Source of the DNA: Octopus bimaculoides
Lineage: Eukaryota
DNA length: 41,451 nt
Direction of reading: 5' to 3'
NCBI RefSeq assembly: GCF_001194135.2
Contig: NC_069004.1
Coordinates: 2,889,613 to 2,931,063, forward strand
The first letter of the stretch is position 1, and each line of letters starts with the position of its first letter. The position numbers and the translations under genes are program-made. Below are positions 3,071-34,687 of the stretch, in pieces. Below the pieces are notes generated by a model. The model made no database searches and was not told the DNA's origin. It saw nothing but the letters and a program-made list of their open reading frames with translations.

Positions 3071-3531
3071 TTTGTCCCCATAATTGACCTGATTTAGCTA
3101 CTAATACCTGGGGTCCCTAGTCCTAGTTTCCTCTTCTCCCTTTTGTTTGTCTTCCTTAATATTGCTGGTAAATGGGGTAAAGACCCCCTTTTGTCATGAA
3201 TGACCATCGGATTGCACCTAGAAAGTTAACCTCACGACTGGCACAAACTGATTAAATTTTGGGATCAATCCGGTACTGGACAAAGATTCTGGACTATTTT
3301 CCCTGTTTTTTTACTGAAACTTTTCACAGTGGTCGGGTTCATTTTTAGTATTCTCGTTTGTGAGAGCAGTCAAGTTTATTTCAAATAGTCTCTCATTGAG
3401 AGGACGTTGGTGTTGCCTTGGCCGAGGTTTACACTCTCTGAGTGCTCGTTACATTTTATTATTATTGTTTTTACACAATTTTCTGTTTTTTTTTTAAAGA
3501 AATTTTTGTTTTTGTGTGTTTGTCGTTGCAG

Positions 3532-3616
3532 TTACGTTGATCAGCTCCATGTTGATGTTTGTCCTGTTTATATCAGAACTCAACTATTATCTTACCAAAG
3601 AAGTACATCCAGAACT
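3532..3616 (+). CDS. ERGIC3: ERGIC3 coding exon (TM1 region), runs into N-gap 3617-3856
   Basis: ttgcag acceptor, phase 1; (V)[28 protein letters not shown]. Confidence 0.93.
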
Positions 3617-4516
3617 NNNNNNNNNNNNNNNNNNNNNNNNNNNNNNNNNNNNNNNNNNNNNNNNNNNNNNNNNNNNNNNNNNNNNNNNNNNNNNNNNNNN
3701 NNNNNNNNNNNNNNNNNNNNNNNNNNNNNNNNNNNNNNNNNNNNNNNNNNNNNNNNNNNNNNNNNNNNNNNNNNNNNNNNNNNNNNNNNNNNNNNNNNNN
3801 NNNNNNNNNNNNNNNNNNNNNNNNNNNNNNNNNNNNNNNNNNNNNNNNNNNNNNNNATCTCTACTGATGTGGAGAAACAAGGTAACCGAATCTGCCCCAC
3901 TTCTCCTGCTTCTTGACAAACCCTTGTTCCAGCAACCCTTTAATCAGGGACCTTTCAACTACACCCATCCCATTTTATGTATTTAAGAATTATTTCTCTT
4001 TTATATATTTTAACCCTTTTGTTAACCATATTTCTGTTGAGATGCTCTCTGTTTCTTTCAATTAATTTGAAATATAACAAAGAATTTAGTAAAATAACTT
4101 AGTTAACATTAAGCTAGTGTTAGGAACATAAATTGTGACTAAGGTTTAATGGAATATTTTAATTCAAAACTTACGAAAACAAGACATTTATACTACAGAG
4201 CCAGATCCAGTTTCAGCCGGTTTGGTAATGAAAGGGTTAAGAATCGTTTCTCTATTATATATTTTAACCCTTTTGTTAATATTTCTGTTGTGATGCTCTG
4301 TGTTTCTTTCAATTAATTTGTACCACATCCTTGTGTTGTTGTTTTTCTCTTGTGTTTGTTCTCCGATTTTTTGTTTTACTATTTACCACATGCTCACACG
4401 GACCCGTGGCCTTCCGACTGACTTTGGACTACCTAATTTGCAGAATTCTTTCTACCATTGGATTACATTACTTTGTTCATTCAGAATATGCCATTTCTGC
4501 ACCTTGGTTGTGAATC

Positions 4517-4555
<39 letters not shown>

Positions 4556-6603
4556 NNNNNNNNNNNNNNNNNNNNNNNNNNNNNNNNNNNNNNNNNNNNN
4601 NNNNNNNNNNNNNNNNNNNNNNNNNNNNNNNNNNNNNNNNNNNNNNNNNNNNNNNNNNNNNNNNNNNNNNNNNNNNNNNNNNNNNNNNNNNNNNNNNNNN
4701 NNNNNNNNNNNNNNNNNNNNNNNNNNNNNNNNNNNNNNNNNNNNNNNNNNNNNNNNNNNNNNNNNNNNNNNNNNNNNNNNNNNNNNNNNNNNNNNNNNNN
4801 NNNNNNNNNNNNNNNNNNNNNNNNNNNNNNNNNNNNNNNNNNNNNNNNNNNNNNNNNNNNNNNNNNNNNNNNNNNNNNNNNNNNNNNNNNNNNNNNNNNN
4901 NNNNNNNNNNNNNNNNNNNNNNNNNNNNNNNNNNNNNNNNNNNNNNNNNNNNNNNNNNNNNNNNNNNNNNNNNNNNNNNNNNNNNNNNNNNNNNNNNNNN
5001 NNNNNNNNNNNNNNNNNNNNNNNNNNNNNNNNNNNNNNNNNNNNNNNNNNNNNNNNNNNNNNNNNNNNNNNNNNNNNNNNNNNNNNNNNNNNNNNNNNNN
5101 NNNNNNNNNNNNNNNNNNNNNNNNNNNNNNNNNNNNNNNNNNNNNNNNNNNNNNNNNNNNNNNNNNNNNNNNNNNNNNNNNNNNNNNNNNNNTATATATA
5201 TATATATATATATATATATTAGCATGGTATCATATATCAGTATTGTACTATGGTAGTAGTATCGTTACTTTGGTATCATATTTTATTCTGGTATTATATA
5301 CGCTGGTGATGCATGCTGGGATATTTCAATATTGTGTTATTACTGCTGCGATATATAATATTTTTATGAAGGTATACTGTTCAGCATATGCTTCAATATT
5401 TTATGTTCTTACAATATATTTTTACCATGGTATCATGTCATCATCATCCTCATCATCGTCATTAAATGCCCGTTATCCATGCTTGCGTGGGGTTGGATGC
5501 TTTGACCAGAGCTGGTAAGCTGAGGGGCTGCACCAGACCCCAGTCTGATTTGGCATGGTTTCTACGGCTGGATGCTTTCACATGCCACTGGCACAGGTGC
5601 CAGTTGTGTGACACCAGTATCTGCTACAACTACGATTTCACTTGACTTGATGGAAAGGTGCTTTTTACATGCCACTGTAGATGTTGTAACGATGATTCTA
5701 ATGAGGAAGATGTAATTACTGCAACATGTAGTGCTTTCAGTGTTTTTTTGTTTAGTTATGTGAGATTTTTAAGAGTCAGTTTACAATCACTTGTCATTGC
5801 AGTTTGATTGTAATGGTCGACTTCTGTCCCAACACTTTTATCACTCATCTGTTGTAGGACGCCTGTCTTTTGCAGCTGTTGCTCATCTCTTGTTTATTAC
5901 AAACCACAAAAGCTTCTTCATTGCATGTGAAATTTTGACTTCTTTTCACAGCAGCAGAAACTTTTCTCTTCTATCATAAATTTACACACACACACACGTG
6001 TTTTTAAATGCATGTAGGCAAAGTGGCTGAGTTCGTTTTGAGCATTGGGTCTCACAGAGGCAGAATGGCTGAGTTCCTTTCAAGCTTTGGGCCTCATGGA
6101 GGCAAAGTGGCTGAGGGCCTCAACAAATTCTGCCTGACCCATGCCAGCATGGACAAATGGACATCAGAACAATAATGATGAGGGTAATTTAGCTATTAAA
6201 AAAAACAAAAACAAAGAACTAGCTCTCCATTGGTTACGACAATGAGTGTTCTTGTTGATCCGATTAACAGAACAGCCTGCTCATGAAATTAACATGTAAG
6301 TGGCTGAGTACTCCACAGATATGTGCACCCTTCATGTAGTTCTCAGGGAGATTCAGTATCCAGTGTATACGTTTTTTTTAAAGGTAGCATGTAAATTAAG
6401 GGAAATTTGGTTGCTATTTCTAGTATGTGTAGTGTCCACGTAGACACTTGTTCATTGTCTTGTATTTTTTAGATCACATGACCATTGATTAACTTCTCAC
6501 CTTTTTTTTTTCTCTCTAGTGATAGGAGGGAAGAAAATCAACGTAACAGAGGTAAGACAAATTTTATTTTTCCTGTCTGTCTGTCTGTTTGTTTCTCTGT
6601 ATC

Positions 6604-6640
<37 letters not shown>

Positions 6641-8208
6641 CGTCATCTTCATGATCATGCTGGCATGGGTTGGACGGTTTGACAGGAACTGGCCAGGCTT
6701 CAATTGTCTGTTGTGGCATGGTTTCTACACCCGATTCCCTTCCTAACCCCAACAATTTTACAGAGTGTACTGGGTGCTTTTTATGTGGCACTGGCATGAG
6801 TACCATTATGTGGCATCAGCACAAGTGCCTTCCATGTGGTGCTGGCACGAGTACCATTACGTGACACTGGCATGAGAGCCATTATGTGACATCAGCACGA
6901 GTGCCTTTCATTCAGCCAGTGTTAGAAACATAATTTGTGACTAAGGTTTGGTGGAAGATTTTAATTCAGAACTTACGAAAACAAGACATTTGTACTACAG
7001 AGCCAGAGGCAGTTTCAGCAGGGTTGGTATCAAAAGGGTTAAGAATCATTCCTCTATTATATATTTTAACCGTTTCCTTACCGTAATTCTGTTGAGATGC
7101 TCTGGGTTTCTTTCAATTAATTTTAAATATAACAAAGAATTTAGTAAAATAAATTAGTTATCATTAAGCTAATGCTAGGAACATAAATTGTGACTAAGGT
7201 TTGGTGGAAAATTTTAATTCAAAACTTACAAAAACAAGACATTTGTACTACAGAGCCAGTAGCGGTTTCAGCTGGGTTGGTAAAGACCACTAACAAAAAA
7301 AAAAGGCAAAAACAAAGAAGCAAAAATTAATAAATAGTCTCTTTTTTCTTTTTTTCTGAAAGAACCCTGAAAAAGCTCTGTTAGATCCAAACCGCTGTGA
7401 AAGTTGCTACGGTGCTGAAACTACATCTGACAGGTAAGTTATACTTTTCTAATTACATTCTCTCTTCTGATACCTTTCTCTCAGACACTGTCTGTGTTTA
7501 GTTGTGTTGGTGTTATTGTTGCTGGATTTCCTCGTCGCTTTGCAGAGTACGGGTCTGTATAGACACCTAAATAAATATATAGCTTCAGGGAAATTAGACA
7601 CGCAAGGGTCTTTTCTTCAGCTTGGCTTGAGGGTTGACCTAATTGTCCAACAGGATCCTCTCGAGCTCCCAGTGTTGCGTGTGTATTGTGGGAGGAAAGT
7701 AACTTAAGTCCAATCTAAACAAGTTTGTATGCTTCAGTACACACTTCATTTGCATAACAATGATATTAGAAAGACTCTCCAGCTGAATAAATTGTGTGTG
7801 TGTGTGTGTGTGTGTGTGGCTCTATGTGAATAGCTGTGCGTGTGTGGCTCTGAATATCTGTGTGTATGTGGGTGTGTGTGTATGGCTCTGTGAATAGCTG
7901 TGCTTATGGGCCTCTGTGTGTGTGTGTCTGCATGTGTGTCTGTGTGTGAGACTGTGAATAGCTGTGTGTGTGATTGTGTGTGGATCTATGCAAATAGCTG
8001 TGTGTGCGTGTGACTCTGTATGTTTTTGTCAGTGTGTGTGGGTGTATGCATGCATGTGTGAGTGGCTAAGGGTGTATGTGTGTGTGTCACTGTCTATGTC
8101 TGTGTGAGTAACTCTGTGTGTGTGTGAGAGAGAGAGAGAGAAACAGTGGCTATGTGTGTATGTGCGTGCACATGTATGTGTGTCTGTCTGTGTGTATTCA
8201 TATGTGTA

Positions 8209-8245
<37 letters not shown>

Positions 8246-11200
8246 CTGTGTATATAAGTCTGTGCGTCTCCGTGCCTGTGCCAGGCTGTGGCTGTCCTCT
8301 ATTTCCCCCATTTGATAGTACTACAGCTGGGCCTCATCGGTAATCGTTATATTGGATTTCAGAAAAGTAAATTGATTTTAATTACACGTCTATCTCTGTC
8401 TCTTTGTTTACATTTAGCTGACATGTTTCCTGTCTTGGCATGTTTCATTTATTATTCCTCCTTTGTTATCGTTCTCGTTTGGCTCAGGTCAGCCCTTCTG
8501 AAACAAGCCATTAGTCCAAGGACACTCCAGATGTGACCACCTCGTCTTTCTTTTCTGGTATATAACAGGGTATTTGTCATCTTGCAAGGCTTGTCACTGG
8601 AACCTACTCTGGTGACCGAGAGAGTGGCTAAACCATTGTCCAAGCCTTTGTCTCTCAAATCCAGTGGCCTGCAACTGTCTCACTATCATTTCATTTCTTG
8701 ATCTAGTTTATATTTTACACCAGTGTCGCCTTCCTGGCACTTGTGCCAGTGGCACGTAAAAAGACATAAAAGCACCCACTACACTCTCGGAGTGGTTGGC
8801 GTTTGGAAGGGCATCCAGCTGTAGAAACTCTGCCAGATCAGATTGGAGCCTGGTGTTGCCATCCGGTTTCACCAGTCCTCAGTCAAATCGTCCAACCCAT
8901 GCTAGCATGGAAAGCGGACGTTAAACGATGATGATGATGATAATGATATGAAGCATGCCTGCGTGGTTTACAAAGTTTGCTTCCCAACCTTGTGGTGTTG
9001 AATCAGCCCAACTGCATGACACATTGGCCAAGTGTCTTCTGTTATAGCTCTGAGCTGACTCTGAGTTTTGAGAGTGGATTTGGTGAATGGAAACTGAAAG
9101 CTTCTTCNNNNNNNNNNNNNNNNNNNNNNNNNNNNNNNNNNNNNNNNNNNNNNNNNNNNNNNNNNNNNNNNNNNNNNNNNNNNNNNNNNNNNNNNNNNNN
9201 NNNNNNNNNNNNNNNNNNNNNNNNNNNNNNNNNNNNNNNNNNNNNNNNNNNNNNNNNNNNNNNNNNNNNNNNNNNNNNNNNNNNNNNNNNNNNNNNNNNN
9301 NNNNNNNNNNNNNNNNNNNNNNNNNNNNNNNNNNNNNNNNNNNNNNNNNNNNNNNNNNNNNNNNNNNNNNNNNNNNNNNNNNNNNNNNNNNNNNNNNNNN
9401 NNTGATTTCCTCAAGCGATAAAGTCTTTCAAGTCTCTTCCTCTCTCTCTGCCTCACCAGCGGCTTACTGCTGTTTCTATCTCTTTTGGCTGATGCTGGTG
9501 TCACATAACTGGCACCCATGCCGGTGGCACATAGGGCCTCACAGAGGCAAAGCAGCTTAGCTCCTTTTGGGTGCTGGCCCCTCACAGAGGCAATGACCAA
9601 GACCTTTGGCATTATGTCATGCTTGAGAAGAAGACCCATCAAGCTGAGAAAAATCGCAGTCATGGCAGGTACCGGTGTCACGCAAATGGCACCCATGCCA
9701 GTGGCACGTAAAAGTACCCATTACACTCTCGGAGTGATTGGCATTAGGATGGGCATCCAGCTGTAGAAACCCTGCCAAATCAGACTGGAGCCCAGTGCAG
9801 CCTTCCAGGTTGCCAGCCCTGGTCAAACCATCAAAGCCATGCCAGCATGGATGACAGACATTAAATGATGACGAGGATGATGATGATGTATGGCAAAGAT
9901 GGATGGAGTGTGGGGAAATGTTTATATTATTTATGTTGATTCTTTTGTTTTTCAGGTTGCTGGAAATTTCCATTTTGCTCCTGGGAAAAGTTTTAATCAG
10001 CACCATGTACATGGTAAGTTGTCTTAGAATGTACCACATGTTGAAGTTGGTGTGGCCACAGAATAACAGTTAGTTTCTGCACTTGTTGAAGTTAATGTTA
10101 TCCCTCCACACTGAGTTTAGTTTGAACCCAAACACACAGTGGCTGATGTTATCCCACACACTAAGGCTAATGTTATCCCACACTCACTGTAGTTACTGTT
10201 AACCCATACGCTGTGGTTGGTGTTAACCCACATACTGAAAATGTGGTTATCCCACATTGGTAATATTTTGTGTACCCTTATACCCACACACACGTCATAT
10301 TTGCAAACAGGTTGGTGGTATCCCACACATCGCAATTGAAATTGGTGTCCACAATGTCTGATATTTGTTTCTACTTCTTTGTCTATTTCAGTCCATGATT
10401 TGCAATCTCTGGGTGGACAAAAGGTAAGCGCCATTTGTTTTTACTCTCGTTTTTTTTGTATTTGATAACACTTTCTTTTTTTCCAGTTTGTTTCTATGTC
10501 CCTTTCTCCATACTGACACTCATCATCATCATCCAGAGTTTTAAATCCATAGCAACTGAGGTAAGCAGGTGCAGCCCACCCCAACCTTTGGGCTGGATGG
10601 TGCCCATTCTCCTTTGCTATCATGAGGCTTTTTTGGACCTGGATTTTCTACAGGGAGCATGCCCTTGCTTACCCCCAACCTTAGTTTCTAGACATGAGTG
10701 GTCCAGAGACACTGGGTAGACAAATATATTATTGAGGTGTTGTTTTACAGCAGGGTCCCCTTCCTGTTGCTAACCCATACCTGTCTTTCAAGTAAAGGGT
10801 CTCTTATTTGATGTGTCTTCAAAGGCATGAGATGAGCTGAGGATTTGTCAATAGGGGGATCTAACACCAATACAGCCCTCTGACTCATTGGGTCCTGTTG
10901 AGCTGTCCAACCCATACCAGCATGGAATACAGATGTTAAGTAATGATGATGATGCTGCCCTATGCTTTGTTACTTTTGTAGAAGCGAGCAAGAACTGAAA
11001 ACACAATGTCTAGCCCAAAGCTGCCTCCTTCAATATTACTCTTTCATTCTATTTTGTCTTGAATGTTACTTGGTGACCTAACTAGTTGCTGGTGAAAAAG
11101 GCATTCATTGGTGTTGGTCATAGAAACCTTGCCAAACCAGACTTTAGAATCCAATACAGCCCTCTGACTCATTGGGTCCTGTTGAGCTGTCCAACCCATA

Positions 11201-13418
11201 CCAGCATGGAATACGGATGTTAAGTAATGATGATGATGATGATGTCGAAAAGGAGGAGGAAGGGCATCCAGCTGTAGAAAATCTACTTCAAATTCCATCT
11301 GAATCGTTTTAACATGGAAAAGTGGATATTAAAATGAGTCAAATCAATTTTTGTTAAAGAAATTTGCATAGAATGAATCTGATTAGAAAAAGAAAGAAAA
11401 AACAAAATTTTATGTTTTCTGTTTTTTTTTTCAAGTTTAACATGTCGCACAAAGTGAAGACATTATCCTTTGGGAAACCTTATCCAGGAATTATGAATCC
11501 GTTGGATGGTGTACATGTAATGGCAGACAAAGGTCAGGATTTTCGGTTTCTTTTACTCCCTTTTTCTTCCTTTATTGCATTTTGATTTTCATTCTGTTTG
11601 GTGTATCCTGAATATGGGGGACAATGCATGTCAGTGTACGATTTGGCTATGTGGTTAAGAAGCTCACGTTGCAACCATGTGGCCATGTAGTTAAGAAGCT
11701 CACGTTGCAACCATGTGGCTTTGAATTCAATCCCACAGAGTAGTACCTTCAATGTCTTTTATTATAACCCAAGGCTGAGCAAAGCCTTGTGAGTGGATTT
11801 GGTAGACGGAAATTGAAAGAAGGCTGCTATGGTCATGTGATGTGTATGGATGAGGACAGCTGTGTAAAGAAGATCTCTAGCTGTGAAGAGAACCTGTGGT
11901 AGAGGTAGACCTAGGAAGACATGGGATGAGGTGGTGAAGCATGATCTTCGAATGTTGGGCCTCACAGAGGCAATGACTAGTGACCAAGTCATTTAGCGAT
12001 ATGCTATGCTTGAGAAGAGTGGTCAAGCCAAGTGAAACCATAGTCATGGCTGACGCCAGTGTCACGTAACTGGCACCTTGTATATTCTTTTCTGTCTTAA
12101 GCAGCTTGGTTGGTTTTCATGGCCTATTCTTGTATTTTAAAATCTTTTTACCTTGTTTTGTAATTGTCATTTTTAAAAGAAAAAAAAAAGGGGGTTAACT
12201 CTTGAAGAACATTGTTATGGATTGTCATCATCCTCCTTGTCTTAACATTTGCTTTTTCCTATGGCTGGATGCTCTTTCTGTTGCCAAACCTCACCTGTTT
12301 CCAAGCTTTCACAGAATATTGATTTCAAACTTTGACAGAAGGCCAACAATTTCAAGGAAGCAGTAAATCAATTGCACTAACCCCAGTACGCAACTGGTAC
12401 TTATTTTATTGACCCCGAAAGTATGAAATGCAAAGCTGACCTCGGTGACATTTGAACTCAGAATGTAAAGACAGACAAAATGTTTGCCAAGCACTTTGCC
12501 TGACCTTCCAACAATTCTGTCAGTTTGCCACCTTGAACTTCCACAGAATATTCATTTCTTTATTACCCACAGAGGGGACAAACAGGGATAGACAAAGGGA
12601 TTAAGTCAATTTCATCAACCCCGGTGCATAACTGGTACTTATTTTAATCGACCCCGAAATGATGAAAGGCAAAAATCGACCTCAGCGGAATTTGAATTCG
12701 GAATGTAACGGCAGATGAAATACCGCTAAGCATTTCGCTCAGCATGCTAATAATTCTGCCAGCTCCCTTTCACAGAATATTGGAAATGAAAGACATTACT
12801 GTATGATGGTGACATTCATTTCGAAATAGCTTGTGATGTCACAACAAAGAGACACCAACACTCATCACATGAACCAATCATTTTCATTGGTTTAACATCT
12901 GTTCTTCCATGCTTGCATGGGTTAGCTGGAATTTTGTGGAGGCAGATTTTGTGTTGCCAACCCTCACCCATTTCCTTACGACTGCATGTGTCCAATGAAG
13001 ATTGGAAATGTGTAACAATATTTGTATAATGGCAACAGATGTTAATGGTGATGATGATGATGAAAAGAAAGTAAGATCTAAGAAACGATAAATTTTTGGT
13101 AAACTTTATTATAAAATATCAATCCTTCTTGTCTGATCATACACAGTTTGTCAACATCACCACCACCATCATCATCATTATTATTACTCCATAGGAAGCA
13201 AAGAGGGAAATGGTGGAAGAGTCATTGAAATAAATTTAAAGTATCTGGTTGATGCTGCTCTAATTCTAGCATCGTATACCCGTACCAATTGCCATAAATG
13301 TGCCAAATGTTCCTCCTCCTTGAATCATTGTTTTGCCCACATTCTGAACCAGTTCTCGGCCTCGTAAACCAAATCTGAAATTGAAATGAAAATGTTTATA
13401 AATATTTTTGATGGCCCG

Positions 13419-13459
<41 letters not shown>

Positions 13460-16400
13460 CATACATACAAAAAGAGATAAAGTATTAGAAAAAAAAAATA
13501 AATAAAAATTCTCAGCATGGCAGTAAATCTAAGTGAAAAAGTTAANNNNNNNNNNNNNNNNNNNNNNNNNNNNNNNNNNNNNNNNNNNNNNNNNNNNNNN
13601 NNNNNNNNNNNNNNNNNNNNNNNNNNNNNNNNNNNNNNNNNNNNNNNNNNNNNNNNNNNNNNNNNNNNNNNNNNNNNNNNNNNNNNNNNNNNNNNNNNNN
13701 NNNNNNNNNNNNNNNNNNNNNNNNNNNNNNNNNNNNNNNNNNNNNNNNNNNNNNNNNNNNNNNNNNNNNNNNNNNNNNNNNNNNNNNNNNNNNNNNNNNN
13801 NNNNNNNNNNNNNNNNNNNNNNNNNNNNNNNNNNNNNNNNNNNNNNNNNNNNNNNNNNNNNNNNNNNNNNNNNNNNNNNNNNNNNNNNNNNNNNNNNNNN
13901 NNNNNNNNNNNNNNNNNNNNNNNNNNNNNNNNNNNNNNNNNNNNNNNNNNNNNNNNNNNNNNNNNNNNNNNNNNNNNNNNNNNNNNNNNNNNNNNNNNNN
14001 NNNNNNNNNNNNNNNNNNNNNNNNNNNNNNNNNNNNNNNNNNNNNNNNNNNNNNNNNNNNNNNNNNNNNNNNNNNNNNNNNNNNNNNNNNNNNNNNNNNN
14101 NNNNNNNNAAAAAAAAAAAAAAAAAATAGCGTTAATGTGAAGTTAAAATGAAAAAAAAAAATCAAATCTAGCAATAATTTACAGCTTATCAGAATTTAAT
14201 GTCCATTTTCCATGCTGGCATGGGTTGGACGGTTTGACTGGAGGTCTGGAAAGCTAGAAGACTGCACCAGGCTCCAATCTGATCTGTTTCTACAGCTGGA
14301 TGCCCTTCTTACCGCCAACCACTCAGAGTGTAGTGGTTACTTTTTGCATGCCACCAGCACAGGAGCCAGTCAGGCGGGCCTGGCATCAATCACATTTGGA
14401 TGGTGCATTTTACATGCCACCGGCACGGAAGCCAGTCAGAGGATATTGGCATCAGCCACGTTCGGATGGTGCTTTTTATGTGCCACCAGCACAGGAGCCA
14501 GTCAGTGGGGGTACTGGCATCAGCCACGTTCAGATGGTGCTTCTTCTAACGGGCATGATGGGTCGATAAGTAAGCAACTTCGCTTTTGCCATCCGGTTTC
14601 ATCAGTCCTCAGTCAAATCGTCCAACCCATGCTAGCATGGAAAGCGGACGTTAAACGATGATGATGATGATATCTGGTCTGTTAATTATTACCACTGCTA
14701 TATGTAGTTGACGAAAATCGCATTCACATTTTTTGTAGAAGTCGATAATAAAGAAATTACAAGCATTGACAATTATACGGTTGGAAGGAATTTGACCAGA
14801 TCCATTATCAGGACAGGACCCTTCCATCAAATGGTTTTAATTCCACTTTATAAACGAAAGTTGAATTATAACATTGCATAACGGAAATTTTGACCTCGCA
14901 TTTACACGCGACTGTTTTAAGCGACGTGTTGGAAGAATCGGTAGGGCATCGGGCAAAATATTGTGTGTTGTCTCGTTACGGCATTTAATGTTTTGAGTTC
15001 AAATCCTGCTGAAGTCAAATTTGCTTCACCTTTCTCGTATCGGTAATATAATAACATCAATCAAGTACATCGGTCCAGTGTAATATTTCATTATAGCTAA
15101 GGCGGTGAGCTGGCAGAATCGTTAACGCACCGGACAAAATGCTTTGCAGCATTTCGTCCGTCTTTACGTTCTAAGTTAAAATTCCGCCGAGGTCGACTTA
15201 GCCTTTCACCCCTTTCGGAGATCGATAAAATAAGAACCAGTTCAGTCCTGAAGTCGATGTAATCGACTTCTCTCCGCCTCCGAAATAGCTGGCCTTTTGC
15301 TAAAATTTGAAACCTAGGAAAGGAATTATAAAAAGACTAGACCTGCTCCATCTGGGGCGCAAAACAACACCACCGAGCACTTAAGATAGTCAGACATAGA
15401 AATGGTATAAATAAAAATAGGTGAAGAGGGGGGGATATATTGTTATCGTTTGTTTTTGAATAAGTGTGATGGTGGAGGTGGTGTAAGAATGTCTGTGTTT
15501 TGTATGTCAGGGTGAAATTATAGTTATTTAGGTTTTGAACGAAAGACTGTTGCTGATTTTATCTTGTGTTATTATGTTCTTTGAAACAATGATTTCACAC
15601 ATCATGTTCTGTGTTATATTAAATGGCCCTCCCTTTCTGAACGTGTAGTGTAAGTGTGTGAGAGGTGACTGGAAGGCAAGGAACAACGACCATGAAAGAG
15701 ACTTAGAAGGTCACGTAGTTGACTTCAGATTGTCTGGTTTTCAAATGAAATACAGGAATAGAATATACACAACATGCATGAGGACACATAGACACACACA
15801 TACGAAGTCTATTTGTTGTTTCTAGACCATTGCCCTTCATTCATGTTTTTTTTGGGGGAATTTACGGTATATGTCGATGTACCACTGTATATATTAACAA
15901 TGGAAAGAAACAAGACAACGTGCGTGTGTGTGTGAATAGATGTCTTGTCTTTTCGTTTATATCTCCCTACATATTTTTTAAAGTTTGGTGAGCAGAATTC
16001 TTGAGGAATGAAAAGCAGTTTAAGATTTCGGACAACCTTAAGAAAATAAGATAGGGGAGTTGGACAAAAAAGAAAGAAAAAAAACAGGCTTTATGCATGT
16101 CATATAAACCCCTCATAACTTTTTAATTTTTGTAATTTTCAGTAAATTTTTGTGAATTTGTGTTCTACACACGGGGATTCATACCATTATGCAAACATTA
16201 AAAAATAAAATTTTTTTGGTGAGTGATTAAGGACTATTTAACTTATTTTTAGCACGTCTCACAACCACCTCATACCATCCTCGTTTGTCACTGACGTATT
16301 GTTTGTTTTTCAGTATCTTTCGCCCCATAAACACATTTAAGGGGATTGCTGGGATTTGAACCAAAAATTCGGACAATCCGTATTTTAAACTCTGATTTAA

Positions 16401-19400
16401 AAAGAAAGATTCGAAAAATTAAAATTTTTCTAAAAATCCAGGAAAAAAAAAATTTTTAATATGTTTTCTATAGTCGTGTGAATTCCCCCGTGTATAGAAT
16501 ACAAATTCGCAAAGGTTTTCTGAAAATTTCAAAAAATAAAAAAGTTATGAGGGGTTAATATTGAGTGCTTAAAGCAGAATTCCTCCAAAACACACACACA
16601 ATATATAATATATATTGTGTGTGTGTGTGTGTCTGGTGTGTTTTACTTGTAAGATTCAATGACATATTGAAATATACATAAACCGAGAGAAGCTAGAAAT
16701 TATGAATGAAGGAAGGCCACGAGAGAGAGAGAGAGAGAAACTAATAATGTGTACATGCACGTGCATGTTGGAAATTATTACAACGAGTGTAAAATATTAC
16801 TATTGTGAAATTCATTTAAATATTGCAATCAATTTCGATATTAACAGAGAAACAAAGAACCTTTCTTTTATTTTTTTCTCCGCCTCCGAATGATTAAAGC
16901 TGTTTTAAATAAAATCAAAAGCTCAACGTACTTTTAATAAACTTGTAGTTCTATGTCCATTACGAGTTTTGCTTTCAAAGGAACCGGGATTTGGCCGTTC
17001 GAAGAGCCGGATTCTCACAACTTTCAGGGAGTAGGGGTGGATGCAGAACTACCAGGACACTTGTGTATTTATGCCTAATTACTGAGATGGTAATTTAGTT
17101 AATGTGGTCAGTATACAGTTTATGTACATGTATTACAGTACAAAGGGCAGCTGTTCATACACCGAAGGCCTTGGGGTATTTCGTTTCGACAGGGCTATCA
17201 CCAAACTTGCAACAGTCTTCTAGTAATTTTCTAATTAGAATCAAATAAAACCATGAAATGTTAAAAAAAACCCTCCAAAATCCCGGCGCCGAGGTCAACT
17301 TTGCTTTCATCTTTCCATAATCGATAAAATAAAATAACGTACCAATCAAGTACTGAGGTCGATATAATCGATAAACGAACCCCCTGGCTTTGTGTTTAAC
17401 TTCGAAACTATTCTATAATAATTATTAATTCCGTTTGTGTGTGAAGAAAGCGAAGTTAGGGAGACAACAGACTTGACCCTTTAGCATTCAGATTGCTCTG
17501 TCGAATATATTGCTTATTTATTTATCGTTTTTTGAATTAATCATGGATTGTCTCGTAGCTTCAAAATTTCCATGATACGAGTTGTTTATTTTTTTAGAAT
17601 AACATTTGACATTGTAGGGTAGACGTGAGAAGCCAGGTTTGGTGGCTTTGGGCATAAACCAGGGAGATTATTGGGGTCAGATATGGCCAGTTTATATATA
17701 TATGCTAAAGGGTTTTTAAGCAGTTAAGTTCAGTATAAAACTAGTTAAAGAAAGCAGCGGGGAGGGGGAGGTTTGTCTTAAAAGAAATAGAAAAGTAGTG
17801 GAATGTTTGGTAGAAGAAAAAAAAATATATTAAAAAGCAGCAATATGGTTATTTACAGGACGGAATTGGTTTACATAAGAGACAATGTATGCGTATTTAC
17901 AAACCTGATAATCTCCCGATTCTTTGTGCAATCTAATCCGAGAGACAGAGCAGACTATTAATATTTATATTCCAGGGGTACCTTGCCTTGTCTTGTCTTG
18001 TCTTTTATTTTCTCTCACACACGGCTTGTTCTCTTTGAACGTCACTTCCGGTTTCGTAGTTGTCTCCCTTCCCTGCTTCTGGTTGGCTTTCTTCTCTTCC
18101 TTTCTTTCCTGAAAAACTTTTTCTCTAACTTGTTTTTCCTTTATTACTTTCTCTCTAATTCACTAATTCTTAGTCTTTCTTTTGCTCTGCAATATTTTTC
18201 TTACCTTCTTTACTCCACTTTCATCCCTCCTCCCGTCTCCCTTTCTTTATTTTTTCTTTACTTCTGCACCTATCACTGTCTGGATGTCCACCAGAAAGAT
18301 TTCAACTCAGCACAGCCAACTCAAGAACGTCTTGTCAACTGTTTTGCAGTGCTGCTGCTAATTACAGTGGCAAGTTGTTTTCACCCTGTAAATTGACGTG
18401 GTTATTTGAGGGCTGATGGTTCTTATCACTAGCACAGCATTAATGATGGGTCTTGAATGCTGACGACCTACGTTGGCTAGAGACTATCATAATATAAAGA
18501 AAAAAAAATGACATTTTTATGTATTAATTAATTTGCTTATATATTTATTTATTTGTGTCTTTGCAGAACAAATGATGTTTCAGTATTTTGTGAAGATCGT
18601 ACCAACAATGTATGTAAAAATTGATGGAAGTGTAAGTAATCATCTTTGTTGCTCTTGTGGCTGTGTATCCCTAAGTAAACTCTTGATCCAGCAGACCTGT
18701 AATTTTAGGCAACACTCCAACTGTGACCATCCCTTCTTCATGGTACATGTTATCTAGAGCTACAGCAATATCTTTATCTAATGCAGTAAGAATGGGGAAT
18801 TTGGCTGCTATTTCCTGTTGTTTTACAGTTATGTAGGACTACATTGAGTGATGGCAGTTTAAGTTTAGCTGTTATGTTTAGCACACTGAGTGATAATGAT
18901 AATAAAAAAATATATAGGTGTTTATTTATGTATTGTATATCTTACAGATTGTGCATAGCAACCAGTTCTCAGTGACCCGACATTCCAAAGTGGTCTCTTC
19001 AGGTTTCGGTGACTCTGGTCTACCAGGAATGTTCATTATGTATGAACTCTCTCCAATGATGGTCAGTTATACAGAGAAACAGAGGTGAGTGAACCTGAGA
19101 CAAGAATTCTTCAACCTTTCTCTTGCTTGCTTTTCTATTTTCTCTTACATTAGTTGGTCTCTCTCTCTCTCTCTATATATAGTTGAAATTTATTGAAAAA
19201 CAATGGATGAAGACAGGTGTATAAACAAGTAGGTGTATTAGTTTGACGCTCAGGAAGGTGAGAAAGTCTTTTACATTTCGTGACTGTGCTCTTCAACAGA
19301 CAGAAACACAAGGAAATAAACAGAGAGAGAATTAAAAAAAAACTTTTGGAGTTAGCCGTCAATCATGGCGATATGTATATATATAAAATCATGATATATA

Positions 19401-21014
19401 TATATATGTAATCTTATGCTTGCTCATACACACATGCACTTGCACACACACACAAGCTGGGTTACTATTATCTCCCCTTCCAGTCAATGACATGTGAAAC
19501 TGTTAATCCAGACGTTTTTTCTCTCCTCATTCCTTTCTGTTGAAGAGCATAGGCTCGAAACATCAAACACTCTTCCATTTTTTCTCAGCATCAAACTAAT
19601 ACACCATTTTTGTTGTTTCCTCACCTATCTCTGTCTTTTGCACCTTACACCAGACTAATAATGACAAAATTATAATGTCCCCCAAGTTCTTCATAATGTT
19701 TGATCCCTCTCCTCCTCTTTTTTTTGCAGATCTTTCATGCATTTTCTCACAGGTGTCTGTGCAATTATAGGTGGGATATTTACAGGTGAGTTTTATTTTA
19801 CCTCTCTTTGCTGATGAAGTATTCTTGTTTTGCTTTTTATCTGTGTTCCAGTTCCTGCTCTTAGCCATTTCTTAAGACTTACAAGAAACGTATCTAAGTC
19901 TAAAAGGAGATGAGAGAAAGGATAGAAATGTGCTGTGATGTCTGATTATGTAATGCAAATTCATTATGTGTGAGAGGCATTCAAATACAGAGACCTTCAA
20001 CAGTCGTGGCTGTGTGGTAAGAAGTTTGCTTCCCAACCGTGTGGTTCTGGGTTCAGTGCCACTGTGCGACACCTCGGGCATGTGTCTTCTACTATAGCCT
20101 TGTGAATGGATTTGGTAGTTGGAAACTGAAAGAAGCCCATTGTATATATTCACATATAGGTATATGTGTGCATAAATGTGTTGTTGGTTTGTTTACATCC
20201 CTGTAACTTAGTGGTTTGGCAAAAGAGGTTGATAGAATAAGTACCAGGCTTAAAAAAAGAAGCACTGGGGTCAATTCATTCAACAAAATACTCTCCAAGG
20301 TGGTGCCCCAGTATGGCCATAGGCAAATGACTGAAAAATGGTAAAGGTACCATCACCATCGCCATGGGTCAATCACTGCCTTCTGAGTGGATCTGGTTGA
20401 CAAAAACTGTACAAAGCCCATCATATATATATATGTATGTGTGTGTGTGTTTGGATGTTGACGTTCCATGCTTGTCACCATTTGACTGAAAACGGTGATG
20501 TTGTTTACATTACTTGTTGATGTTGGGTTGCTCTGTGTTATTGAAGACTTGCTTGGAAAACCGATATGGGTTGGAGACAGGAAGAGCATCCCTGTTGTTT
20601 CAATTTTCTGTGAAGAACATATCTGGCCTTGGGGGAATATTACCTTGCTTGACCAGATGGGTATTTGACCATAGACAATCTGCATCAATGAATTTCTGTC
20701 TGACCTCATGCAAGCATTTAAAAGTGGATATCTAAGTGATGATGATGATGATGGCGGTGGTGATGATAATGAATTTCATTAGAATTCTTCTTATTCCATC
20801 TTTATTAATTTTCTAAATTAAATTAAATGCTTGTCATTTGTGAAAAAAAAACCCCCGAAAACAACACAAATAATTATAAATTCAAAGTATTGGCTCTTTT
20901 CTCCCATCGTGTGTCTTCTTGTGATGTATTTCAGTGGCGGGACTCATCGATTCCATGATTTACCATTCATCGAGAGCAATTCAGAAAAAGATAGAACTTG
21001 GAAAAACTTCATGA
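3532..21014 (+). CDS. ERGIC3: ERGIC3 (ER-Golgi intermediate compartment protein 3, Erv46 family), spliced gene, 5'-partial. Visible join: 3532-3616.., 6520-6551, 7363-7433, 9956-10013, 10392-10423, 11436-11532, 18567-18631, 18948-19084, 19730-19785, 20935-21014
   Basis: The exon translations are collinear with ERGIC3 ([92 protein letters not shown]). All visible introns are GT-AG with consistent phases. The last seven exons (58, 32, 97, 65, 137, 56, 80 nt) match the human exon sizes as I recall them. Confidence 0.97.
3983..4320 (+). mobile_element. TTAA-flanked piggyBac-like MITE (4014-4236) plus a partial tandem copy, each preceded by a 23-bp spacer
   Basis: TTAA|CCCTTT...AAAGGG|TTAA termini; spacers at 3987-4009 and 4241-4263. 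Confidence 0.75.
6520..6551 (+). CDS. ERGIC3: ERGIC3 32-nt coding exon (variable luminal loop)
   Basis: T-rich tract then tctctctag|TG ATA GGA GGG AAG AAA ATC AAC GTA ACA GAG|gtaaga. Starts in phase 1 and ends in phase 0, which links exactly to the phase-0 exon at 7363. Confidence 0.75.
6603..6910 (-). mobile_element. RTE-related repeat, reverse orientation, with internal tandem units (similar copies at about 5445-5680 and 25525-25700)
   Basis: Trinucleotide tail followed by catgctggcatgggttggacgg and gtggcactggcatgag repeats. Confidence 0.7.
6915..7285 (+). mobile_element. Same MITE family: 3' half copy, 23-bp spacer, then a near-full copy
   Basis: aaagggTTAA-gaatcattcctctattatatatt-TTAAcc; internal sequence matches 4014-4236. 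Confidence 0.75.
7363..7433 (+). CDS. ERGIC3: ERGIC3 coding exon
   Basis: [23 protein letters not shown]; T-rich aag acceptor and AG|gtaagt donor. Confidence 0.93.
7790..8250. repeat. (TG)n-rich degenerate microsatellite
   Basis: Directly visible. Confidence 0.9.
8720..8945 (+). mobile_element. RTE-related non-autonomous repeat with (GAT)n tail
   Basis: gcacccactacactctcggagtggttggcg..gggcatccagctgtagaaac..cgtccaacccatgctagcatggaaagcggacgttaaacgatgatg. Confidence 0.75.
9405..9890 (+). mobile_element. RTE-derived element 3' region with (GAT)n tail
   Basis: Shares ctcacagaggcaatgacc..gcttgagaaga with the RTE remnant at 11828; ends in ccatgccagcatgga..ttaaatgatga. Confidence 0.75.
9956..10013 (+). 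CDS. ERGIC3: ERGIC3 coding exon
   Basis: [19 protein letters not shown]; ttcag / gtaagt; 58 nt. Confidence 0.97.
10392..10423 (+). CDS. ERGIC3: ERGIC3 coding exon
   Basis: (V)[10 protein letters not shown]; ttcag / gtaagc; 32 nt. Confidence 0.95.
10867..11238 (+). repeat. 88-bp direct repeat (10867-10954 / 11151-11238)
   Basis: 87/88 identical; RTE-related tail sequence. Confidence 0.85.
11436..11532 (+). CDS. ERGIC3: ERGIC3 coding exon
   Basis: [32 protein letters not shown]; 97 nt. Confidence 0.96.
11828..12078 (+). mobile_element. Decayed RTE-clade LINE 3' end
   Basis: [15 protein letters not shown] / [28 protein letters not shown], the classic RTE ORF C-terminus, with a frameshift and a stop. 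Confidence 0.85.
12320..12770 (-). mobile_element. Two adjacent family-A SINE copies
   Basis: Reverse complements of the family-A head and core at about 12320-12535 and 12570-12770. Confidence 0.75.
13105..13110 (-). terminator. Putative ROMO1 polyadenylation signal AATAAA
   Basis: tttatt on + strand, about 155 nt after the ROMO1 stop, followed by U-rich sequence on the - strand. Confidence 0.6.
13266..13374 (-). CDS. ROMO1: ROMO1 (reactive oxygen species modulator 1 / Mgr2 family), last coding exon; nested antisense in an ERGIC3 intron
   Basis: ttcag acceptor then (R)[35 protein letters not shown]. This matches the conserved ROMO1 C-terminus (human [34 protein letters not shown]); 109 nt, phase 2. 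Confidence 0.95.
14195..14670. mobile_element. Two RTE-related repeat ends in opposite orientation forming a foldback, with three internal tandem units of about 62 bp
   Basis: 14195-14240 and the reverse complement of 14610-14655 match at 41/46 nt. Confidence 0.75.
15100..15320 (+). mobile_element. Family-A SINE, CpG-intact copy
   Basis: ggcggtgagctggcagaatcgttaacgcaccggac..ccgccgaggtcgac; about 16 CpG by manual count. Confidence 0.8.
16109..16554. mobile_element. Non-autonomous DNA transposon (MITE) with imperfect TIRs of about 110 bp
   Basis: cccctcataactttttaatttttgtaattttcag... versus ...tgaaaatttcaaaaaataaaaaagttatgagggg; flanks TAAA / TTAA. Confidence 0.75.
17477..17712. mobile_element. 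Short MITE with 11-bp TIR CCCTTTAGCAT
   Basis: ccctttagcat ... atgctaaaggg; flanks are degenerate TTAA. Confidence 0.6.
17982..18039 (-). other. Candidate non-coding first exon of ROMO1
   Basis: Lies between the ETS-CRE motif and a donor-like AAG|GTACCC. Vertebrate ROMO1 has a non-coding first exon. The 5' boundary is unknown. Confidence 0.3.
18040..18051 (-). promoter_or_regulatory. ETS-CRE composite motif (CCGGAAGTGACG), putative ROMO1 promoter
   Basis: Exact overlapping ETS (CCGGAAGT) and half-CRE (TGACG). It sits at the edge of a CpG-rich block, just upstream of a candidate AAG|GTACCC donor at 17982/17981. Function is inferred. Confidence 0.5.
18567..18631 (+). CDS. ERGIC3: ERGIC3 coding exon
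   Basis: (E)[21 protein letters not shown]; ttgcag / gtaagt; 65 nt. Confidence 0.97.
18948..19084 (+). CDS. ERGIC3: ERGIC3 coding exon
   Basis: [45 protein letters not shown]; ttacag / gtgagt; 137 nt. Confidence 0.97.
19200..19310 (-). mobile_element. Repeat fragment with a degenerate copy of the same hammerhead-like motif (probable Penelope-like pLTR); related fragment at 37621-37690
   Basis: The - strand reads CTGTTGA A GAGC ACAG TCAC GAAA TG TA AAAGAC. The flank gaagacaggtgtataaacaa..caggtgtattagt.tgacgc..ggaaggtgagaaag recurs at 37621. Confidence 0.4.
19534..19567 (+). mobile_element. Penelope-like-element-type hammerhead remnant
   Basis: ttt-CTGTTGA-A-GAGC-atag-GCTC-GAAA-CA-TC-aaa; intact 4-bp stem II but a variant core. 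Confidence 0.4.
19730..19785 (+). CDS. ERGIC3: ERGIC3 coding exon (TM2)
   Basis: (R)[18 protein letters not shown]; ttgcag / gtgagt; 56 nt. Confidence 0.97.
20005..20345 (+). mobile_element. tRNA-derived SINE (family B here), near full length; other copies at about 8950-9107, 11640-11825, 23685-23950 and 31620-31930(-)
   Basis: gtggctgtgtggtaagaagtttgcttcccaacc..gggttcagt.ccactg..gtgtcttctactatagcc..gtggatttggtag..ggaaactgaaagaagccc. Confidence 0.8.
20935..21014 (+). CDS. ERGIC3: ERGIC3 last coding exon
   Basis: (V)[25 protein letters not shown]; stop TGA at 21012-21014. Confidence 0.97.
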
Positions 21015-21024
21015 CACGTGACTC

Positions 21025-21030
21025 AATAAA
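21025..21030 (+). terminator. Candidate ERGIC3 poly(A) signal AATAAA (further candidates at 21305-21310 and 21367-21372)
   Basis: AATAAA 10 nt after the stop codon; usage cannot be determined from sequence alone. Confidence 0.35.
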
Positions 21031-21686
21031 TTCCTCTTCCGAGAGAAAAAAAAAAAAAAAAGACAAAATTCAGAAAAACTCATCTCCTTTTGTTGTCTTT
21101 TTCTTTAATGTTTTGTTGCCCCTCCCCTCTATTTTGTCTGTCTCTCTCTTCCCTTTACTCTTGCTCACTGCCTCTCTTGATTACTCAGTCTCTTCCCCCT
21201 CTCTGTCACTCGCTTGCTGTCTCACTTCCTCCCCCTCCCCCCTCCCTGTCTCACTTGCTCATTGTCTGTCTGTTTGTCCGGACTCTTTGTCAGTTGATAA
21301 TTAAAATAAAAAGTTGTTGCTGTTATTGCTTAAATGGATTTCAAGATGTTAATTTATTAATTTCGAAATAAATTTAATTGGGTAAAGGGGCTTGACATTG
21401 TGTTGAGGGAAAGAGGCATCCATGACATGGAGTAGAGAGTGTAATTGTAATGCTTTTCTGTGGTTAGTTGAAGGGAAGGTGAAGAATGAGACAGAAAGAG
21501 GGAGAGAGAAGCGTCCGTGATGTGAGGTTGGGGAACTTTGCCGTTCGTCCTTTCAAGGTTGATAAATACTCTTGAAGGGTGTTATCAATTTAGATCCCTT
21601 GTAAAGATATTTGCTGTTTTGTTCATGCCCTTATGGTGACAGATGTAACCCAGTTGATTGTTAAATGTGTGCATAATAATAATAAT

Positions 21687-23409: not shown

Positions 23410-34687
<11,278 letters not shown>

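Follow-up and report, generated by a model that had tools for sequence, protein, structure and literature searches.

A ROMO1 gene antisense in an intron of octopus ERGIC3 probably represents an ancient nested gene pair found in molluscs and insects

The DNA examined in this study is a stretch of 41,451 nucleotides from Octopus bimaculoides (NCBI RefSeq assembly GCF_001194135.2, contig NC_069004.1, positions 2,889,613 to 2,931,063 of the forward strand), referred to below as the window. It contains part of ERGIC3, a gene of the Erv46 family, and the terminal exon of ROMO1, which lies on the opposite strand inside one ERGIC3 intron. The locus is probably a copy of an ancient nested gene pair, ROMO1 antisense in an ERGIC3 intron, that has been kept mainly by structural inertia. 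Orthologous genes occupy a homologous intron in equal orientation in Mollusca (octopus, Biomphalaria and Patella) and in Arthropoda (Drosophila and insect-like contigs). The original prediction was partly borne out: its structural reading, which had placed ROMO1 antisense inside an ERGIC3 intron, is right, and the cross-species data strengthen it. The principal features of the octopus locus, in window positions, are listed here.

About 3525..21014, plus strand: in-window part of ERGIC3, located by tblastn with human ERGIC3 and XP_052832462.1; Pfam ERGIC_N and COPIIcoated_ERV
11436..11532, plus strand: ERGIC3 exon, ending GCA GAC AAA G and followed by gtcagg, with the donor GT at 11533
11533..18566, plus strand: host intron of 7,034 bp, phase 1, GT..AG, its length including the 563-N gap at face value
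18567..18631, plus strand: ERGIC3 exon, preceded by tttgcag and starting AA CAA ATG ATG
13266..13374, minus strand: last coding exon of ROMO1, with coding sequence 13374..13269 and stop codon TAG at 13268-13266
13375..13395, minus strand: ROMO1 3' splice site, a pyrimidine-rich tract and AG, tttcatttcaatttcag; the acceptor reads ...tttcaatttcag then A
13105..13110, minus strand: ROMO1 poly(A) signal AATAAA, 156 nt past the stop
13546..14108, no strand: assembly gap of 563 N (estimated length) inside the ERGIC3 host intron

The host gene was traced by tblastn with human ERGIC3 and with deposited octopus proteins, which placed its exons on the plus strand between approximately 3525 and 21011. 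Both domains of the family were found (PF13850 and PF07970), and the exons are colinear with human ERGIC3, although several are missing in assembly gaps and exon 1 lies outside the window, approximately 9.3 kb upstream. Exon 11436-11532 joins exon 18567-18631 in frame and in phase 1 across a GT..AG intron, and the same join is present in two deposited O. bimaculoides proteins, A0A0L8HT03 and XP_052832462.1; the in-phase connection over 7034 bp that had been predicted is therefore confirmed. The intron that carries ROMO1 is the one directly before the MMFQYF exon of ERGIC3. It had been described as far larger than its neighbours, which holds for the adjacent and 3' introns (approximately 0.3-1.1 kb, versus 7 kb for the host intron) but not for the upstream ones, which are also large (approximately 3.7 kb, at least 2.4 kb and, for intron 1, approximately 12.8 kb). 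The deposited octopus model XP_052832462.1 has 292 residues, several exons falling in gaps. It lacks the exons for roughly human residues 59-135 and 150-206, which probably lie in the gaps at 3617-3856, 4556-5192 and 9108-9402, and it carries an intron-derived stretch (9887-9955).

Within the host intron, the terminal exon of ROMO1, its stop codon and its poly(A) signal are visible, while the octopus start site and exon 1 are unseen. The exon opens with the third base of a split Arg44 codon (a phase-2 intron) and encodes 35 further residues. It matches the Pfam Romo1 family (PF10247) with E=4.2e-13 and a score of 49.9 bits, above the curated cut-off of 27.6, a match that covers profile positions 31-66 of 66 only. 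The exon is intact: none of the 21 invariant columns of the ROMO1 alignment is altered, and it shares 86% identity with the Biomphalaria protein; its acceptor (cag, then A TTT GGT) aligns with those of 11 other loci. The AATAAA at 13110..13105 is the only minus-strand AATAAA or ATTAAA in 12701-13266. The 5' half of the gene (approximately 44 codons, CFDRxKMGF...SALR) was not found in any readable sequence of the window by tblastn, profile or motif scans. A profile built from five N-terminal halves of ROMO1 and searched against all six frames with hmmsearch, filters off, gave a best window match of E=0.26 on the wrong strand, and the motif scans, successful for exon 1 at all other loci, returned nothing in the octopus window. 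Protein searches recovered no cephalopod ROMO1, the best matches to the exon (92% identical) coming from other taxa, and an exact-match look-up of the open reading frame around the exon gave no record.

The gap at 13546-14108 begins 171 bp upstream of the ROMO1 acceptor. Since the ROMO1 intron measures 69-332 bp in relatives and the first coding exon is not in readable sequence, that exon most likely sits in the gap, a placement inferred from these distances. The gap is bordered by a (TA)n/(TACA)n microsatellite and, at its opposite end, by a poly(A) run, a pattern typical of short-read assembly breaks. When compared with the chromosome-scale v2 assembly (GCA_001194135.2, CM046624.1, offset 19,359 bases), the window was 100% identical and had the same N runs; the v2 assembly therefore closes no gap and gives no independent check. 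As the gap falls within the ERGIC3 intron, it does not bear on the ERGIC3 reading frame. A mis-join at this position is unlikely, given that consecutive ERGIC3 exons flank the gap in the right order and orientation and that the same gene order is found in unrelated assemblies of other phyla.

It had been suggested that the nested arrangement be sought in other assemblies, and it was found in the gastropod Biomphalaria and the limpet Patella and, beyond that suggestion, in insects. The annotations of two Biomphalaria assemblies and of Patella caerulea contain, in order, a gene for the N-terminal part of ERGIC3 (288-297 residues, plus strand), Romo1 (80-81 residues, minus strand) and a gene for the C-terminal part of ERGIC3 (109-110 residues, plus strand). 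ERGIC3 is thus split at the ROMO1-bearing intron in these annotations (L007 1-12094, L008 1-11428 and L012 1-12757), and the many ERGIC3 models of 109-110 residues (Biomphalaria and Patella) exist because annotation divided the gene around the nested ROMO1. Models of 109-111 residues with the same start have also been deposited for Lingula, Capitella, Sepia pharaonis and Bugula. In Drosophila novamexicana, a Romo1 gene of 79 residues is annotated on the opposite strand inside the 372-residue ERGIC3 orthologue, between the exons for human ERGIC3 residues ~263 and ~267. The whole ROMO1 gene lies inside one host intron in Biomphalaria, Patella and Drosophila, and the layout is identical in the compact genomes represented by an ENA contig (Trichogramma-like) and by Logan contigs (chironomid-like). 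Across nested loci, the length of the host intron ranges from approximately 0.6 kb (L019) to approximately 7-8 kb (octopus and termite-like), and includes insect introns of only 0.6-1.15 kb.

A scan of JGI metagenome contigs with the ROMO1 alignment yielded 80 loci, 15 of which were flanked by opposite-strand ERGIC3 exons, in the expected order, on at least one side. Another eight had no ERGIC3 despite a 10 kb flank on at least one side, and the remainder were too short or resembled mRNA. The metagenome, ENA and Logan contigs were assigned to taxa by best ROMO1 match. Among all nested contigs from these three sources, the best matches were to an ant (97%), Trichogramma (94-95%) and chironomids (91-93%); others come from termite-gut samples, and four are unplaced. 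The 15 from the JGI scan resemble ants, Trichogramma or termites by this measure, apart from the four unplaced ones. In the unplaced contigs (L035/L036, L049 and L060), ROMO1 is approximately 70-77% identical to the best named proteins, while identity over the C-terminal part of ERGIC3 is 50-55% in L035/L036 and approximately 62% in L049. A fungal or protist origin was considered for metagenome loci with apparent identities of 55-58% and was rejected, as introns in the alignments had lowered the values and the proteins are animal-like.

The nest was not present in every lineage sampled. ROMO1 lies away from ERGIC3 in Priapulus and in the spider Parasteatoda, and the nest is absent from copepod-like contigs (L024/L030). 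The Parasteatoda gene (L095 10001-22442), which is not near ERGIC3, has a single intron of approximately 12 kb. Two further loci agree with the nest. The Capitella contig has ROMO1 exon 1 in antisense, 3 kb upstream of the MFQYF exon, with exon 2 in a gap (L010 1776-2989), mirroring the octopus. In Lingula, ROMO1 is antisense directly upstream of the MFQYF exon, and the contig lacks the middle ERGIC3 exons. The Lingula contig (L009 5628-8962) carries ERGIC3 exon 1, then antisense ROMO1, then the MFQYF exon, leaving residues ~40-268 uncovered, which may reflect a mis-assembly or a rearranged copy.

The positions of the introns point to a single origin of the nest before the divergence of molluscs and insects, followed by inheritance. 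Octopus, Biomphalaria, Patella, Drosophila and the contigs resembling termite, wasp and midge all have the host intron in phase 1, at a distance of 8-9 codons from the preceding NPxD motif and 3-5 codons from the MFQY that follows. In 11 other loci the Arg44 codon of ROMO1 is interrupted by a phase-2 intron of the gene's own, and the octopus acceptor falls at the same point. It is because both the position and phase of the host intron and the phase-2 intron of ROMO1 have been kept that one origin is favored. Independent or repeated retrogene insertion was rejected, as ROMO1 retains its own intron and occupies the same host intron in each lineage. The structure of ROMO1 does vary: the chironomid-like contigs have an intron after residue ~26 and not in Arg44 (L004 4756-5056), and the gene is intronless in L019 (2084-2320, nested) and in the copepod-like, un-nested L024 (4347-4586) and L030.

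Only the nest itself is common to insects and molluscs. An RDD-family gene lies downstream of it in octopus, Patella and Biomphalaria, whereas the neighbors are Prp31 and MutS genes in Drosophila, mTERF and actin in the wasp-like contig, and cwf18 and guanylate cyclase in the midge-like contig. Flanking genes change from phylum to phylum, so the nest has outlived ordinary synteny. The octopus neighbor downstream of ERGIC3, which lies on the minus strand (23410-34687), belongs to the RDD family (FAM8A1-like) and has a long, low-complexity first exon (33474-34687) and a weak RDD match (27449-27688).

In vertebrates, the two genes are close but separate. The order CEP250-ERGIC3-SPAG4-CPNE1-RBM12-NFS1-ROMO1-RBM39 is found on cattle chromosome 13 (PMC11311081) and on turkey chromosome 22 (PMC8470100). 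ERGIC3 and ROMO1 are therefore linked and un-nested in both species, with four genes between them. By our own rough estimate, the chance of two given genes lying four genes apart is approximately 5 in 10,000 for a genome of approximately 20,000 genes. In human, the distance between the two is presumably approximately 150 kb. Because chance proximity is improbable, the vertebrate linkage probably descends from an ancestral adjacency or nest.

The favored explanation of the octopus locus would operate as follows. ROMO1, predicted to encode a protein of approximately 80 residues of the TIM23-associated Mgr2/Romo1 family in two coding exons, lies on the opposite strand inside one specific phase-1 ERGIC3 intron. 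The two genes would form separate transcription units, ROMO1 having a 3' splice site, a stop codon and a poly(A) signal of its own, and the whole ROMO1 gene would be spliced out of the ERGIC3 pre-mRNA with the host intron. By analogy with other species, the octopus ROMO1 promoter is expected between the 5' end of ROMO1 and the downstream ERGIC3 exon, and the host intron has probably grown to 7 kb through transposon insertions. Persistence would be due mainly to structural inertia, in that un-nesting would need two breaks in one intron of an essential host gene, or a duplication followed by a loss. A nested gene that is hard to remove without breaking its host could therefore outlive gene order without functional coupling. 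The losses in Priapulus, the spider and the copepod-like contigs indicate in turn that the nest is dispensable rather than obligatory. Old nests have been found to diverge less in expression than young ones (PMC13343718).

Several points weigh against this explanation. ROMO1 exon 1 is unseen in the octopus copy, and the NCBI annotation of the locus calls no nested gene. The Lingula and Capitella loci are both informative in part only. For an age beyond the protostomes, the evidence is the linkage seen in vertebrates, the deuterostomes that were sampled. Additionally, the retention of Romo1 in the much-rearranged Drosophila genome could equally signal selection.

In compact genomes, the distance from the ROMO1 ATG to the downstream ERGIC3 exon is only 200-460 bp, within which the promoter of ROMO1 must fall. 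When the spacer was scanned for ETS, NRF1, CRE, YY1, DRE, E-box and Sp1 motifs, none recurred across species, and no promoter could be verified for octopus ROMO1 within the readable window. The original prediction had listed a terminal exon, an AATAAA and a candidate promoter in the intron; the exon and the signal are there, while no promoter could be placed. Further features of the intron are given below.

18044..18051, no strand: ETS-like 8-mer ACTTCCGG beside TGACG, a single match with approximately 0.3 expected by chance
14600..17800, no strand: zone of raised observed/expected CpG ratio, 0.7-1.4 versus 0.1-0.4 in the ERGIC3 gene body
14188..14662, no strand: element 1 resembling a miniature inverted-repeat transposable element (MITE), with 53-nt terminal inverted repeats and three internal 66-bp tandem units; copies occur elsewhere in the locus
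16088..16575, no strand: MITE-like element 2, with 52-nt inverted arms

The ETS-like site at 18044-18051 may be the candidate promoter that was meant, and it is not above chance. The CpG-rich zone at 14600-17800 may mark a stretch upstream of ROMO1 that is unmethylated, or simply consist of young CpG-rich repeats; the ratio was dropped as a promoter mark, as the raised zone (14.6-17.8 kb) coincides with repeats. Over window positions 11000-21300, the ratio is 0.0-0.4 across the ERGIC3 exons and 3' introns, a strong depletion set against the raised values of that zone, and the contrast could reflect germline gene-body methylation with an unmethylated island, or young repeats. At least 16% of the host intron is repeated nearby. 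The arms of the MITE-like elements could fold as hairpins in the ERGIC3 pre-mRNA. Copies of a repeat resembling a short interspersed nuclear element (SINE) are located at 12363-12523, 12604-12765 and 15090-15280, with up to five to seven more within the surrounding 60 kb; ARAGORN identified no tRNA gene in these copies, and Rfam and tRNA scans identified no RNA genes in the intron or the window. An open stretch of 28 residues at approximately 11880-11990 (plus strand) looks, by eye only, like a fragment of the tail of a retroelement open reading frame.

There are several potential alternatives to inertia. The nest may be held by selection for shared regulation, for example through an intronic ROMO1 promoter that acts on ERGIC3, either as a shared or bidirectional element or as the internal start of a short 3' ERGIC3 transcript. 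Although we consider this unlikely, the nest has been kept across molluscs and several insect orders while the flanking genes changed, and the short spacer of compact genomes makes the ROMO1 promoter abut the downstream ERGIC3 exon. The many deposited "ERGIC3" models of 109-110 residues that begin at the Met of the MMFQYF exon could be taken for such a short product, and a nested gene can induce a short internal host transcript, as shown for ceh-10/polq-1 in Caenorhabditis elegans (PMC12274878). However, such models result from annotation that cut ERGIC3 in two at the nested gene, and the exon starts with Ile instead of Met in L035 and in the wasp-like contig. The spacer has no motif common to species, and the nest was lost in Priapulus, the spider and the copepod-like contigs and dissolved in vertebrates. 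A broader version, in which the nest dates from the bilaterian ancestor, the vertebrate linkage is its remnant, and selection holds it through a ROMO1 promoter that regulates ERGIC3 or launches a short 3' transcript, appears slightly more doubtful again. If true, it would tie the expression of an endoplasmic reticulum-Golgi cargo factor to that of a mitochondrial import subunit.

The original prediction had itself inferred a functional consequence, namely that convergent transcription of two co-expressed housekeeping genes leads to polymerase collision or coupling, or that sense and antisense transcripts form double-stranded RNA edited from adenosine to inosine. On this view, the nest would have a cephalopod-specific regulatory role. 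The geometry is as described, antisense inside a host intron, and co-expression is on average lower in opposite-strand nested pairs than in neighboring pairs, which has been read as interference (PMC12274878). Nevertheless, we regard this outcome as highly improbable. The mature transcripts do not overlap, with ERGIC3 exons at 11532 and 18567 and the ROMO1 exon and poly(A) signal at 13105-13374; the nearest ERGIC3 exon is approximately 1.57 kb from that signal, and complementarity to ROMO1 is confined to the ERGIC3 pre-mRNA. Most ADAR substrates are intramolecular duplexes, and the MITE-like inverted repeats in cis within the intron are more conventional substrates than a duplex in trans. Moreover, the nest is not cephalopod-specific: it also occurs in insects and gastropods, which are not known for recoding of the cephalopod type, and insect host introns of 0.6-1.15 kb tolerate it without cephalopod-specific editing. 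It is equally hard to credit that the octopus copy is non-working, either a relic terminal exon (a pseudogene) or an artifact of faulty scaffolding across the gap. Such a view draws on the visibility of only half of ROMO1, the lack of a gene called here by NCBI, the failure of protein searches to return an octopus ROMO1, and the reuse of gap 13546-14108 by the v2 assembly. It is opposed by the intact exon (21 of 21 invariant columns and the 86% identity to Biomphalaria), by the conserved position and phase of its acceptor, by the presence of a stop codon and poly(A) signal, by the location of the exon exactly where ROMO1 lies in other molluscs and insects, and by the consecutive ERGIC3 exons across the gap. 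Structural inertia of an inherited nest thus remains the preferred explanation.

Among known systems, the closest is the Romo1/ERGIC3 pair of Drosophila (D. novamexicana), where, as in octopus, these two genes lie on opposite strands, the host intron is the homologous phase-1 one and ROMO1 has the same phase-2 intron. The two differ in that the fly host intron is approximately 0.9 kb, versus 7 kb with transposons in octopus, and the fly pair is annotated while octopus ROMO1 is not. We take the Drosophila ERGIC3 orthologue to be CG7011. TIMP, nested antisense in a synapsin intron, was reportedly described by Pohar et al. in 1999 as conserved from Drosophila to human. It resembles ERGIC3-ROMO1 as an opposite-strand coding gene kept across phyla in the intron of an unrelated host; the synapsin nest is said to persist in vertebrates, whereas ERGIC3 and ROMO1 are un-nested in cattle and turkey. 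The vertebrate 20q11-type block holds the same two genes in close linkage but, unlike octopus, un-nested and with four genes between. The opposite-strand nest of ceh-10 in polq-1 in C. elegans is a tested model of a nested gene driving an internal host transcript; that nest is nematode-specific, not being nested in fly or human, and its inner gene is a tissue-specific transcription factor (PMC12274878).

In the literature searched, ROMO1 and ERGIC3 were paired only in lists of the genes of a region, and no paper discussed the nest. The nest is visible in the deposited Drosophila annotation, and its conservation across phyla appears not to have been remarked on before. The absence of octopus ROMO1 from the annotation of the locus is most likely due to half of the gene lying in an assembly gap, and the split ERGIC3 models of other species can be corrected. 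The nest is old and ordinary rather than a peculiarity of the octopus, and it points to no new mechanism. A nest of coding genes in a homologous intron of molluscs and insects is a rare genomic character, and it offers a clean case for the question of inertia versus selection in the persistence of nested genes.

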